Below are positions 1 to 11,600 of a DNA stretch of 64,000 bases, piece after piece. Within the stretch, counting starts at the first letter, position 1; each line of letters begins with the position of its first letter. Location of the stretch: contig NC_088855.1 of assembly GCF_963853765.1 (NCBI RefSeq), positions 36,704,001-36,768,000 of the forward strand, given 5' to 3'. The translations under genes were made by a program, and so were the position numbers. The notes below the pieces were generated by a model that had not been told where the DNA came from, did no database searches, and saw only the letters and a program-made list of their open reading frames with translations. Source of the DNA: Magallana gigas (lineage: Eukaryota).

Positions 1-683
1 TTTCAAAATAAAAAAACAACATTTAATTCGTTCATTCTGTCTATATCGCTTGCCATTCAAGAGACAAATTTGAAATTAAAGCGGGGGCGAACGTCAGCTT
101 TTATCCTACGTGCGGAAAACTGACGTTCAGAACAAATGAGCGGTAATAAAAGATTTCCCTGTGGTTCTTTGTTGAGCATTAAGGTGCATTTTTAGGAGCC
201 GTTGCTTGCGTAATTGATTTTAGCAGTAATTCATGATGTCACCCACCCCACATTCCCACAGGCCACTGCGCTAATCCGTGCATTGGTGGCATTTTTATTT
301 CCACATAAACAATCTCATGTAAAAAAAACATTTAACACAAACGTTGCCTTCATTATGAACTTACAGGTATATTTGTTCCCAATTAGTTAACACATATGTG
401 ATTACAATATTTGCAAACAGATTTATGCATTCCAGATACACATTTCAGTGCATAATCTAAGAGCTGAAAAAACGATTGATTGACACCAATTAAGAGTTTC
501 TGATAAGAAATGGATGTTAAGTATTCATAACAGGTAAGTATTCATGATTTCCTACCAAGGACACCATTCCACTTAACATTAACAGTGGAATGTAAAGCTA
601 CCAAAACATTTGCTTTTAGGGTTTCTTAGCGGATCAAAAGTTATACCATCCCCAATTTTCTTAACAATTTTGATAAGTCTCAC

Positions 684-1415
684 CTGCATTCTAGCCGCTG
701 CCCCGCGGTTTCTGGGTTGTAGGGACCGGTGTTCCGTGCTCCTTGGGGCCCCGTCCTTCAGCAACAACCGGATCATGAAGAAATAAAGAACGGACGATAG
801 GACGAGGGGAACAACATAGAAAACAACAAAATCAAACACATAGTAAATCCCGTAGTAGTAGCGCTCCAAAGTATATGTACAGCTCTGAACCACGGTACCA
901 TTCCGGGTGTGGGGGACTACTTTGGCTAAAGCCAGCCACGGAGAGCAATATAAAATAGCCAGAGTCCACAACACAAAAAGTATCCTCCTTGCACGACTGA
1001 CCGTACAAATTGTTTGAGCTTTTAAGGAATGACATATTCCTATGTATCGTTCAACGGTAAAGGCACCTATTGAAAGGGAGGACACATTGGCGCCCAAATA
1101 TCCCAAGAAAACGCACAACGTGCACATAAAAGATCCGTAAGGCCAATCTTCCGCACGGAGAAGGGGCTCGGGAATTGTGGGAAGGTTTGAGGAGATGAGG
1201 AGGATGCAGTCAGCCACACAGAGGCTAAGAAGGTAACAGTTTGTGGGGGTCTGGAGACTTCTTCTCTTCAGTATCACAGTTATGACCAAAATATTACCAG
1301 CAAAGCCAATGATGAATATCACCAGGGGCAGCCCCACGGCCATGACCGTATATTCCAATGAGGGCCCCGCCCGAGTGTCCAAAGTGACATTTTCGGAGCT
1401 CTCGTCCATCCGCAT
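684..1415 (-). CDS. TRHR: Thyrotropin-releasing hormone receptor-like rhodopsin GPCR, first coding exon (TM1-TM5); remaining exons lie left of the window
   Basis: ORF shows GFAGNILV (TM1), TPTNCYLLSLCVAD (TM2), YLGANVSSLSIGAFTVERYIGICHSLKAQTICTVSRARRI (TM3/ICL2, closely resembling vertebrate TRHR) and TM5 VVFYVVPL. Donor CAG|GTGAGA at 684/683 in ICL3; the ORF-track tail 579-683 is intronic. Start at 1415 or 1409. Confidence 0.88.
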
Positions 1416-5641: not shown

Positions 5642-8600
5642 TCAGTCTCCAATGATTTCAGATTCATACTTGCTAGGTGCACACCATAAGACCAACTGGA
5701 TGAATTTAGTCACAGTGTCTAAAAGAGAAAACAATAAATTTAAAAAACCGCGAAAAATACAAATGTGCGAGTTTTTTTTATATATTTCAGAGGTCTCTGA
5801 TAAGAGAGGTAACTCTGACTGGAATATCTGAGTATATCTTAACACCCCCCCCCTCACTAGGTAGAATTGAATTGTATAGAATTCAATTATACTTACCAGT
5901 ATATGGAAGAGATTTCTTCATTACTACAAATGGAACATAGAATACTAGGCCACTGATGACAAAGATGAAGGCATACAGGAACTCGATCCTTGGATCATTG
6001 ATTATTGGGGCTATCACTAGGTATATGGACACACAGAGAACACTTATGGGTAGAATAATGGGCACCTGTCAAAAATAACACACACATTAAAAGGGTAACA
6101 AGGAACTTGCAAATAACTTAATTGTAAAAAGAATCTAACAGGCATGAAAGCCAGTGTTTATTCTGTCAAAATATTTTATATAATAATGCATTATCTCAGT
6201 TTTATATACAATCAATGACTTTTTATGTAAAGCTTATCTCTATGTACGCTCAAATGAAGGAGAAGCTTCCCCACCTTGTAAGGTCTCTCAACATCTTTCA
6301 TGGTGTATCTAAGAACCAACAATGCTGCCATTGTACTGCCGTAAAACATCCAGGCTGTGAAGCTGAAGAAATCAATCAGAGCAAAGATGTCTCCCAATAG
6401 GACCATTAAAGCAGCCAGGAAAGTCTGCAAAACAAGGAGAGGTCAATCAATAGATACTATAAAAGGAAACTTGGCTATGTCAGTTATCACAGTCTTTGAA
6501 GAGTATGTGAACTGTTTACGCTATTTAGTTTTTATCGATGCAATTAATCAGTCTTATAGCCAGAAGTTAGCTGATGTTTTTATCAGAAAGCTGCTTACAG
6601 AAACCAACAGAGATGGGAGAGGGGTGAACTTCTTCAGATGAACGTAGGACAGGACCTGAGGTAGATGACCCTCCCTGGCGGCCACAAATGTTAATCTACA
6701 AACAAACAAAGTGATTCGATGAAAAAATGAAAGAACACGTAGTCCATAACAGGCTACAAGAAACCAAGTCTCATTTTTGTTATGTAACGTTTGTGTTATT
6801 TGCCTGTACAAATAGCAGTACCTCCAAGTTGCTAATATTTGCTACTTTGAACCATTAATGCATGTTAAACCAACATACAAAGTAAATGTACTATATCAAA
6901 AAATTGTCCTAGTTTTCAAACCACTTGATTTGACATAGCTTCAAGTTGGTTTACAATATTCTCTAATAAAAGCTTTGAAATTCAATTTATTTTGGAGACT
7001 GTATAATGTCTTAATACGTTGGCAATTTCTTGATCCTAAAATTTTGTACCTTCCTCCAGTGAAACATGAGCCATTGGCAGCACCAAATGTGGAAAGGGCC
7101 ACAGATATAGGTATAAAGACTGCAGCAACACCCAAAACCCTGTCTCCCCAGGTCTACAAATAACAACACAGAACTCATTCAGTATTCAAGAATAAAATAT
7201 GGAGATGCTTTTGATTTATGATCATACATGTACAATAATGAAGTGAATTTAATGGAGTTATAAGGGTCTTTGAGATATGTATTTATCACAAATCTCAAAC
7301 ATTCCAGAGTCATTATCAGAATGAAGGCTGAAAATTCTTTTCTTTAGGAAGTAAGCGAATGTTGTGTGTTGTGGATGGATTTGAACCACTCACTGCGGCA
7401 ACAGCTGTGGACTGAAGCAGCTCTGCCCGGGTCATCACAGTGAGGTAGGACAGGTTGGTGAACAGGTAACACACCGTCACCAGCGGGATACCAATCATGA
7501 TGGCCAGGGGAAGATTCCTGTCATCAGCAACAAAAACACCCATCAGTTATATTTTGTCTATAGACTGTCCTAAACTTTCATTAAAGCACATCTTCCTTTA
7601 ATCCATGTGAACTTTGTTATTGGGATTGAATCAGGCAATTAAGATCTATCAAATTTATTTGTGTCTTATCATAAGATCAGACGCCACCTATCTTCCATTT
7701 TTTTCTTATCTCTGCAATGTGAAGATTTCCACAACATAATTTCAAAATCATATTTTTGTGTTATATGATCTTTTTCTATTTGGATAAATAGTTTTAATTG
7801 AAAATATAACAACTATACACATTAAATTGCATTTTGCAAGCTATAAAAAGAAAAATTCCAAATATTCTAACTCCAAAAATAGCATGAAAATGCACCCTGA
7901 ATTTCTGGACATGAACAACTGTTTAAATGCTTAAAAAAGAAAAAGAATTTATCAAGGAAAATTATCTTTAATTAACTGAGGAAGTTCGCATTTAAATTGA
8001 AAGATATCACATGTCAACCTATTGCATCGGCTAGAAAATTTGAACAGATAAAATTCAAATTAAATACTGATGATTAAACCTGTTTATTCTTTACAGTAAA
8101 CCCCTGTTTTCTTTCAGTGACTACAGTGAACTTTGTGTTAAACAGAGATGATTAAAGTCTTGACCAACAAATAATTAGAGTTATCTTTCTTCCCATACGT
8201 ACCTTCTTGGGTTCTGAATTTCTTCGGTGATGTAATTTAAGTTATTCCTGCAAAAAACATCAAAACAAATCAGTATTAAAAACTACTTCCACTTCCCCCA
8301 GTATTTTTAAAAAGACTTTTCTGAAAAAGCATACACTCATTTTATTTCAATACATTTGTATTCCAAAATAATTTATAATTACCATCCATCATAAGCCCAA
8401 AGTCCATCATAAAAAGCTAATGCTATTAAGGATGGTGACTGCACAGAATCCTGAAAACCAGTGTTAATTTCCTCTACCTCACCTGTAATATACACATATA
8501 TGTATGCAATCTATTGGTAAAAAAAAAATAAGGTAATAAAATTTCTCAACACGAGATTAAATTTCTGGAGTAAATCAGCGAACATTCTCACCTCTTCCCA

Positions 8601-11600
8601 TGTAGACAAATCCCCCTATGGTTATAACAGCAATAGCGATCAATTTTGCTGCTGTGAAGAAATTCTGTACCTTTGTTGCCAGCTTCACACTGTAGCAATT
8701 GATAGTTGATACAAACACTGAAAAAGATGAGAAAAAATTATGGTATTAAAAATTATTTGCCCAGTGGGAAAACGATATATACCGGTAGATACATTTTAAA
8801 CTTTAATTTTTCTCTATGGTACACTGTACCCAGAGTAAAACTTTCACTTACAAAGACACACGATGGAGACGATTTTGACAAGTACATCAGGGGGTCCACA
8901 CTCAAAGAAAGGCTCAGTGGTGTACAAAGCAAAGCTCATGGATACCACCCCAAATAATGCAGGCTTTAGGATCAGAACAGAGGTCCAGGCAAACAGAAAG
9001 GCAGGAATGGGGCCCAGGGTCTTATGGAATGGTCCAAAGGCCTCGTGAAGATACGCATATTCTGCTCCAGACTTGGTAATCAATGTGCCAAGCTCTGCAT
9101 AGGACAAGGCCCCTGGAAAATAGAAGACTGCAAATGAAAAATCTTAGACTTCATATCTAATATATAATATCTATGTAGGTTTTCTTTAAGGTTTTTTTTT
9201 TTTTGTAAAGTGAGAATACGAAGTGTTTTAATCAAATTAGAAAACAATGCCTACACCGCTAGTTAGTGTGAGTGCATTATATGCTAATACTTACTTTTTT
9301 TGAATGAATCTACTTTGATACATGGTTTATTTTTGCATTTGATACGTGTAAGCTTTTAGAAAGTCATAAACAAAATACATTCCGAAATAAAACAGATTCA
9401 TAGCATATGTTTCAATATACTTCTATAGTGTGTGTGAAAGTAAAAGGATTGGAAAAATCTTGTTGGTTTTCTTTTTTCTTAATGAATATAAAACTACATG
9501 TTTATTACGTGAGTTAGACTAAAAAATAAAAGGCCGTGTAACAGAACAGAATGTGACATTGAAAATAGAATGCTTGAGACTGAGTGATATTAGCACAGTG
9601 GGAGTTATAGGACTGTTCCATGACCAAAGTCCATGCGGAGGGCATCCTGGCACATGGTTCAAGTTCTCCTACAGCCAAAACAAGGGCTTGTCATTGTAGT
9701 CTCTCCAATATGCGAGCATATTGTTGTGTGGAGGACTAAATGGCAAGCTGCCTAACAAGTTAACTGGTCTCCTGAAAAATTCAGTCTCTTTAAATTTTGA
9801 TAAGGATATGCATCTTGATTACATTTATAAAACTGCATCTTTTAGAAAAAAATTCTAAATCTGGAATTGTTTTCTGTTAGTTTATTTTTATTTTTCACAA
9901 ATAAAAAGTTCTGATTTACCAATCTATTCTAGATTCTTTTCTTGATATCAATAAATCTTTGAATGTTTTGATTCGAAATTTCAAACTAAAAATCATTTAT
10001 ATTACTTAATTTCAAATTCTAAGTATGACAGCATTGTATATTTCTGTTTTCCAATTTTGTCTGACATTTCCCAGGAGAGTTAACAAATGAAACCATATGC
10101 GTCACTCCAAGATGTCCGGGAGGATATATATGGCTTCTCTAGAAAATTTCAAGCTAATGTGCCATGGATGTCTCTCCGTGAAGGCCTTTCTGGAACCAGC
10201 CCTTCCTGGAACATAATTCATCACATTTCATATTTCTCAATCAAACATTAACAACATGTCGGCAATCGGATGTCGGCATAGCCTCTGCTTTCCCCATCAT
10301 CTGCTGCTTTACAAGGAACTGTTCCAGAAAGTTTTCTGTGGAGGATTAACTGGCCTACTTAAACCTTAGCAAAAAAAAGGTTTTTAAAAGGAAATAGACC
10401 AGGGGGAATAAAGTTTGAGGTGACATTTTTGTCTCTCCAAGATGTCCGGGAGGGCAAAATGGCACCTATACTCCTATGCTTATGGATGGTATCAAGACTG
10501 AAGCTGATGAAGAAGAAAATGGATAGTGAGGATGATAAAACACAATTTGGTTTTTTGATATGTACATAAAGGACAACAGTCCTTCAGAAACATGGCTTTA
10601 ATGATGTTTTACTGACAAAATGAAGAGCAGATCATACTCTGCAATTATGACATCATCAGCCTCAGTTCGGGCAAGCTTGTAAAATGTGCCAGAGGGTCTC
10701 TCCAACCAGAACCAATGGAGGGCTAACTGGCACTAATGTATGTCACCTATATCAGCCGAGTGCTGCAGTGTCTCTCCACGCACACAGGAGGGCAAGACAG
10801 CACCTGCCAAGCACAAGGGAAGTGCTTAGTCTGATAATCATGTTCATAATCATTATCACAAGAATCTTCTAAATTTTAATTCCCTTATGAACTTCTGAAT
10901 ATAAAATGCAATTTCCCTTCTCTGTAACAATATTTTTTTTATTATCTAAAATAAATGGCCTTATTTATAGGTTCAGCCATGAACATGATTATCAAACAAT
11001 ACACAAAGTGACAGAATGATCAGTTTCCACAGTTTAAAATTCTCTGTTCATGTGTGATAGGTTAAGGAATTTTGATTCATGACCGAATGATTTTGGTTTT
11101 AGTGATGGTGTAAAAGGGTGTGAACTTTCAAATATTCCTTGAATTTCTTTTCAAAAACATTGAGCAAGCAAACAATTTTTCATTCAACATTCCCCAACCC
11201 CCCTAAAACACACACCTACGTAAACAAACATCAAATGTATTAATAAGTAAACAGGCTATCTACTGTCGCATACTCTGTTATTGACAAAAAGATTAAATGA
11301 CAAACAGCAACATAATCTCTCAGGATTAAAACTATCATGCACACAGTGGAAAAAAATCAATCTACATGTTCAAAGCTCGTACAGCAAAAGCCGAGATTGC
11401 ATTCTAATTTTTTTTTTTTCAATCAAGGCTTTGTGATTTCTCTAAAAATTGTATCTATAATTTAAGCTGTCTGGTTTTCAATGCAGTGATCTGTTTTAGT
11501 GACAAAGAATGCATTCAAGCTATCATACTCCTCTACAGATTTTAATGGAAGCACAATGATTCTTAGAAAAAGGATAACATTTTTAAAAAGTTCTTAAGAA

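Follow-up and report, generated by a model that had tools for sequence, protein, structure and literature searches.

The second intron of an amino acid transporter gene of Magallana gigas harbours an array of short hairpins that are lineage-specific structured RNA elements under strong purifying selection. The array lies in a 64,000-nt stretch of contig NC_088855.1 (positions 36,704,001 to 36,768,000 of the forward strand, assembly GCF_963853765.1), hereafter called the window, with positions counted from its first nucleotide; the host, a b(0,+)AT/SLC7A9-like gene, runs on the minus strand, and its 4.2-kb intron 2 is retained selectively in processed RNA. The hairpins represent an undescribed structured RNA element with two new RNA motifs, a bulged stem (type 1) and, in a related clade, a fixed loop (type 2). 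An initial annotation, made from the DNA letters, had counted eight hairpins and possibly a ninth in SLC7A9 intron 2, all built on one geometry around a fixed core, and had suggested that they act as a multivalent protein-binding RNA scaffold or as a novel small-RNA cluster. The conservation across species and the retention of the intron in RNA go beyond that account and were found in the follow-up analysis described here.

Folding of the nine stretches named in the initial annotation revealed hairpins at the given positions (Table 1), but not eight or nine equal ones. Five stretches (units A, B, C, D, and E) folded as stand-alone hairpins, whereas 9618-9657, 10160-10195, and 10324-10353 gave poor folds when taken singly (z about 0). 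The minimum free energy (MFE) structure joined the latter two into one long unit (G+H), in which the 5' half of 10160-10195 pairs with the 3' half of 10324-10353 and an additional perfect 11-bp helix (CUUUCUGGAAC/GUUCCAGAAAG) forms the base of a ~125-nt apical domain. The hairpin at 9618-9657 (unit F) is a variant with a truncated 5' arm; a distant partner for its 5' part was looked for in the window, and none was found. In total, the window contains six type-1 units and one variant, which are local duplicates of each other. The plan shared by units A to E comprises, on the 5' side, a lower stem, a small internal loop (2-4 nt), GUC, one bulged base, and CUCC, followed by a loop of 9-23 nt and, on the 3' side, by GGAG, G(G/A)C, and the return strand of the lower stem. 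The upper stem GUC-U-CUCC/GGAG-GGC is invariant, with 7 bp and a single bulged base (U, replaced by A in unit B) topped by a free-form loop. Depending on the unit, the half-sites are 9 to about 160 nt apart. The window contains four instances of the pattern GTCTCTCC-N2-30-GGAGGR, compared with 0.00 expected.

The lower stems on which this core is seated vary in sequence yet are always paired, as exemplified by GUGCCAG/CUGGCAC, GGUGGCAUUU/AAAUGCCGACC, and AAGACCCCUG/CAGGGGUCUU. When the 5' flank of each unit was grafted onto the 3' flank of every other unit and the products were refolded, the true partners gave -23.6 kcal/mol versus a mean of -16.9 kcal/mol for the swapped ones (z = -9.6), a value reached in 0 of 20000 permutations. 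The covariation score of the type-1 model alignment was 0.287, versus 0.141 for shuffled alignments (0/500) and at most 0.150 for slid partners, and RNAalifold independently recovered the type-1 as well as the type-2 core. Between orthologues, the lower stem of unit E changes from GUGCUG/CAGCAC in the window to GUGCUA/UAGCAC in the nearest species (locus L015), a compensatory replacement of G-C by A-U, and the unit E orthologues of loci L019 and L022 have wholly different, still paired stems. The lower-stem covariation is real and significant and includes compensatory changes between orthologues; the fixed core on differing, covarying stems that had been read from the DNA is borne out by the flank swap and by the model alignment.

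Orthologous loci were identified by searching fragment proteins of other bivalve assemblies with the peptide of the host exon and by examining the corresponding contigs. The closest paralogue of this exon in the window's own genome is only 54% identical; loci with an exon identity of 71-95% at the amino acid level are therefore orthologues. Type-1 hairpins were found upstream of the equivalent exon, antisense to the host gene, in seven assemblies (L015, L016, L019, L020, L021, L022, and L034), and pairwise exon identities indicated eight distinct taxa including that of the window. Two more distant loci (exon identity 60% and 66%) had no type-1 hairpins. Beyond the nearest species, alignment of the locus was limited to exons, hairpins, and two short segments close to a cassette exon.

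The strength of selection was estimated by comparing the window with L015. Hairpin positions were identical in 343 of 360 cases (95%), versus 926 of 1263 (73%) in the spacers, which in addition contained many indels (Fisher p = 4e-23). The adjacent exon (8852-9111, corresponding to 1968-2225 of L015) showed 95% identity at the protein and 82.6% at the nucleotide level; the intronic hairpins (95-100%) are conserved well above the synonymous-site level. Units of decayed appearance were 96-100% identical to their counterparts, and unit F differed at one of 50 positions (98% conserved). An orthologue of unit A was present in L015, unit B showed one difference, and unit C was identical over 59 nt; in unit D, the stems were unchanged and the loop and the internal loop had diverged. 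Three blocks with at least 90% identity in 30-nt windows contain all units (Table 1), although unit D itself falls slightly below this threshold owing to its loop. The segment 10066-10371 was 94-95% identical, and the sequence between the blocks is AT-rich and far less conserved. Covariation and purifying selection at orthologous positions, the hallmarks of a generic conserved cis-regulatory RNA structure, were thus both observed.

A second hairpin family, type 2, is interleaved with type-1 units in L019, L020, L021, L022, and L034, with four copies in each. In the host-sense reading, it presents an invariant 10-nt loop (UCACUGGGAAG) on a covarying stem of ~14 bp, with a covariation score of 0.481 versus 0.243 for shuffles (0/500); the helix was also recovered by RNAalifold. 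Type-2 hairpins were searched for in the window's genome, L015, and L016 and were absent. The ninth hairpin suspected near 10055-10088 proved to be a weak fold, and the type-2 covariance model (R2) gave no match there. The stretch reads TTTCCCAGGAGA, compared with TTCCCAGTGA in other species, and contains the sole window occurrence of TTCCCAG on the written strand. Judged from this common word, which is all that it shares with the family, it may be a weak relic of a type-2 hairpin.

The type-1 motif with its 3' extension occurs at this locus only in the whole 564-Mb genome. Pattern searches with the full motif, a relaxed motif, and the 3' arm alone, each over 564 Mb, gave results essentially confined to the locus, with a similar or higher background in reversed-pattern controls. 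A genome-wide search with the covariance model of the type-1 family (R1), in which the best candidates only were scored and E-values are rough owing to a shortened calibration, returned the five stand-alone units plus two weak isolated matches on other chromosomes (Table 1). The latter were rejected as true family members, as neither lies near an SLC7 gene and both look like chance. A dispersed transposable element, miniature inverted-repeat transposable element, or satellite was rejected on the basis of these pattern and model searches, and Tandem Repeats Finder detected no array. On three of the points by which the initial annotation had wished its proposal to be judged, orthologous conservation was found in seven assemblies, covariation was significant, and scattered copies were not observed. 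The units being clear local duplicates, the array might be regarded as what is left of a local palindromic repeat or transposable element, evolving neutrally and homogenised by gene conversion, but the genome holds no other copies, orthologous copies persist in eight taxa in which the spacers are no longer alignable, and the hairpins exceed the coding exon in conservation. The probability of such a neutral origin is practically negligible.

In agreement with the initial annotation, which recognised no RNA family, Rfam 15 gave no match to the hairpins. The best match in the region 8500-12000 reached 20.8 bits versus a gathering score of 50 and lies outside the hairpins, and nothing was found in the arrays of L016, L021, and L022. 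Small nucleolar RNAs (snoRNAs) are defined by C/D boxes with a terminal stem or by a hairpin-H box-hairpin-ACA arrangement with pseudouridylation pockets. A box C/D or H/ACA snoRNA was rejected, since the internal loops of the units are not pockets and the only hit was the weak one mentioned, which resembles snoU83 (box C/D, E 4.4) and is located at 10580-10661 on the minus, host-sense strand between units C and D. This segment carries indels and single-nucleotide polymorphisms in RNA contigs, and the match is therefore probably due to chance. A coding repeat was likewise rejected: no open reading frame exceeds 74 amino acids in any frame, and the loop lengths disrupt the frame. Together with the structured, covarying nature of the element, this sustains the earlier view that the array is neither coding nor a dimeric DNA site. 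Searches of the literature with motif words and arm sequences yielded nothing useful. To our knowledge, evidence this clean exists for few intronic RNA structures outside vertebrates and flies.

The small-RNA cluster considered in the initial annotation would consist of microRNA (miRNA)-like precursors with a conserved seed (GGAGGGC or GGAGAGA) that are processed from the intron. The hairpins indeed share features with miRNA paralogues and intronic miRNA clusters: they are clustered within 1.2 kb of the intron and combine a conserved 7-8-nt arm core beside the loop with variable loops and compensated arms. Canonical Microprocessor substrates have a stem of ~33-35 bp, with a basal helix below the ~22-bp miRNA duplex. 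In contrast, 16 units folded on both strands with 25 nt of flank per side had stems of 18-25 bp without a consistent basal extension on either strand, and a canonical animal primary miRNA was rejected. Moreover, no Rfam miRNA family matched, one unit carries the 125-nt apical domain, and the arm sequences were not found in the searched literature. We consider small-RNA precursors highly improbable.

The hairpins could also act as DNA, forming cruciforms or serving as palindromic protein-binding sites of a silencer, enhancer, or origin, with the RNA structure being incidental. In the lower stems, wobble-type mismatches of either polarity are tolerated to a similar extent (6 versus 9), as expected for symmetric DNA complementarity. 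On the other hand, the wide range of half-site spacings, the conserved bulged base and G.T pair, the wholesale swapping of stems by compensatory change around a fixed core, and the strong strand bias of the type-2 helices are better explained by single-stranded folding than by duplex recognition. We give action at the DNA level very little credence.

The host gene was delineated by open frames and splice joints. All its joints read CT..AC on the window strand, indicating a minus-strand gene, and the best Protein Data Bank matches of the exon peptide were to b(0,+)-type amino acid transporter 1 (E 2e-19). The location in an SLC7A9-like intron 2 that had been assigned from the DNA is correct, and the minus orientation of the host, which had escaped notice, places the motif as it was originally written antisense to the gene. 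RNA evidence came from assembled, unstranded contigs of three runs (X16, X17, and X20) from two studies with three organism labels. The whole of intron 2 was covered by contigs of these runs. In record 16 of X17, the next, downstream intron was spliced out and intron 2 was kept; record 20 of the same run extended from exon 2 into intron 2, with a loose end at 13427 that reads exon-1 sequence. The contigs stopped short of the upstream and downstream introns. Because of the two X17 records and the lack of contig continuation into the neighbouring introns, the signal represents true retention, selective for intron 2, in processed RNA, the contigs attesting its presence and not its level.

Run X16, and this run only, contained a 56-nt cassette exon inside intron 2 (12878-12933, minus strand; joints 9111>12878 and 12933>13321, CT..AC ends). 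Its length is not a multiple of three, and it may therefore be a poison exon. The flanking stretches 12934-12979 and 12460-12561 are among the few parts of the intron still alignable with L016.

The combination of a fixed bulged stem or loop with free lower stems and spacers, the many copies, and the site in a selectively retained intron suggest a multivalent protein-docking RNA platform that acts in cis on intron 2, a reading to which we give about an even chance. One or two putative RNA-binding proteins would dock on the units within the host pre-mRNA, recognising the bulged upper stem of type 1 and the loop of type 2. Their binding would set the balance between splicing and detention of the 4.2-kb intron and, hence, the amount of productive transporter mRNA. 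The multivalent scaffold of the initial annotation remains in this form the best reading.

Several observations weigh against the docking platform. The hairpins and the retention of the intron are tied by co-occurrence only. The RNA contigs are compatible with an antisense transcript as well, and they give no measure of the level of retention. Furthermore, the invariant U.G (or U-A) pair of the type-1 upper stem reads, in the case of U.G, as a mismatched C.A in the host-sense orientation; complete type-1 hairpins folded 2.1 kcal/mol better in the antisense orientation (17 of 23 cases, Wilcoxon p = 0.004), and the type-1 lower stems were strand-neutral by energy (11 versus 12) and by wobble type (6 versus 9).

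The strand preference of type 1 would fit an independent non-coding transcript from the plus strand of the window, whose hairpins would form a multivalent scaffold, akin to the Xist A-repeat or roX, with effects in trans or at the host locus itself. Two pairs, the invariant U.G/U-A and a G.U of unit B, can form on the plus strand only, and a C-G, U.G, U-A series at one lower-stem position fits this strand, too. However, the plus strand showed no GT..AG joint, the array was marked neither by a contig of its own nor by a step in depth, and no conserved promoter or terminator feature was found. The neutrality of the lower stems lends such a transcript no support either, and type-2 hairpins folded better host-sense in 16 of 16 copies, on average by 6 kcal/mol, with 22 G.U cells versus 2 A.C. 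A functional antisense transcript of this kind is rather unlikely, although it has to be reckoned with. The caution of the initial annotation that G-U wobbles do not settle the strand proved appropriate, as the invariant upper-stem U.G points to the written strand and type 2 to host-sense, with the lower stems showing no preference. For the docking platform, we lean towards host-sense as the functional strand because host-sense RNA demonstrably exists.

In the stem of unit C, positions 10428 and 10429 both read C instead of T in all three RNA runs, a change absent from the DNA run X1, the reference, and L015. On the host-sense strand, this corresponds to A>G; a shared haplotype and A-to-I editing look alike in assembled contigs. 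The variant converts two A-U pairs to G.U on the host-sense strand and to C.A on the other, and pairing is kept host-sense only.

Among known systems, METTL16 substrates present the nonamer UACAGAGAA in a hairpin loop or transition. A substrate of the MAT2A/U6 type was rejected since UACAGAGAA is absent from all units. Outside the hairpins, one host-sense copy is located at 10918-10926 (minus strand), ~115 nt from unit E; the window contains four copies versus 0.57 expected, and the seven orthologous loci contain none. In MAT2A, six conserved hairpins of the 3' untranslated region (hp1-hp6) are bound by METTL16 and control a detained intron (PMC10578476). The oyster array resembles this arrangement in that several conserved hairpins combine a fixed core with stems that vary, in that the host is a metabolic gene with a detained intron, and in the proposed multivalent platform in cis. 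It differs in being located inside the retained intron instead of the 3' untranslated region, and in place of UACAGAGAA its fixed part is a bulged stem in type 1 and another loop in type 2. Should the link to retention be borne out, protein-docking hairpin arrays in control of detained introns would have evolved more than once. With the selectively unspliced intron of a nutrient-transporter gene, structure-guided intron detention can be tested directly in a mollusc.

An extension of this parallel is that the two families form a clade-specific riboregulatory switch coupling amino acid or redox status to splicing of the detained intron, via a sensor protein or the RNA itself. We judge this improbable. 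If true, the MAT2A-METTL16 circuit would have an invertebrate counterpart with wholly different motifs, placed inside the detained intron of a gene for a cystine/dibasic amino acid transporter.

Iron-responsive elements (IREs) carry a CAGUGN loop on top of an upper stem of five base pairs, below which a C is left unpaired. Arrays of these elements, such as the five IREs in the 3' untranslated region of the transferrin receptor, have in common with the hairpins described here the short-hairpin array, the conserved bulge and loop, the covarying stems, and, on the docking reading, a one-protein reader. The antisense type-2 loop contains CAGUGA but lacks the five flanking pairs and the bulged C. 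An IRE was rejected: Rfam gave no IRE match, the flanks CUUCC/AAAAG of CAGUGA pair at three of five positions, and the opposite strand gives the more favourable helix. The Xist A-repeat and the roX-box consist of six to eight short conserved hairpin cores between unconserved spacers and recruit proteins multivalently. The arrangement of a repeated core between unconserved spacers is similar in the oyster array, in which multivalent recruitment of proteins would likewise be the function; unlike these dedicated non-coding RNAs, the array is part of an intron of a protein-coding gene, and sequence likeness is lacking.

Table 1. Hairpins, conserved blocks, and host-gene features; z, folding z score; R1, score with the type-1 covariance model. 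Positions refer to the window unless a locus or chromosome is named.
Feature	Position	Strand	Description	Values
Unit A, type-1 hairpin	9687-9747		23-nt loop, 3' arm GGAGGAC	-31.9 kcal/mol, z -6.5; R1 41.4 bits
Unit B, type-1 hairpin	10089-10137		bulged A (GTCACTCC), 3' arm GGAGGAT	z -3.3; R1 38.2 bits
Unit C, type-1 hairpin	10418-10467		top score to family model	z -3.6; R1 53.2 bits
Unit D, type-1 hairpin	10686-10733		lower stem GTGCCAG/CTGGCAC	z -3.6; R1 37.7 bits
Unit E, type-1 hairpin	10760-10803		lower stem GTGCTG/CAGCAC	z -1.3; R1 37.4 bits
Unit F, variant type-1 hairpin	9618-9657		3' arm GGAGGGCATCCTGGCAC present, 5' arm truncated, without CTCTCC arm	z -0.2
Unit G+H, one long type-1 unit	10160-10353		5' half 10160-10195, 3' half 10324-10353	MFE -53.9 kcal/mol
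Weak hairpin (possible ninth)	10055-10088		TTTCCCAGGAGA; TTCCCAGTGA in other species	z -0.9
Conserved block 1	9522-9784		contains F and A	at least 90% identity to L015 in 30-nt windows
Conserved block 2	10066-10525		contains B, G+H, and C	at least 90% identity to L015 in 30-nt windows
Conserved block 3	10648-10812		contains D and E	at least 90% identity to L015 in 30-nt windows
Type-2 copies	L019 7323-7688; L020 8852-9174; L021 6431-7828; L022 4439-4792; L034 2126-2682			
Weak R1 match	G000:C5:26428961-26429017	-		26.7 bits
Weak R1 match	G000:C7:29322121-29322178	-	in intron of gene with EGF-like repeats	20.4 bits
Host exon	8587-8717	-	open frames and splice joints	
Host exon 3	8852-9111	-	joints; used to find orthologues	
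Host intron 2, 4.2 kb	9112-13321	-	joint 9111>13322, CT..AC ends	
Host exon 2	13322-13427	-	open frames and splice joints	

The window also contains an intronless open frame of 278 amino acids (582-1415, minus strand), located on the strand of the transporter gene and downstream of it, that resembles rhodopsin-type G protein-coupled receptors.

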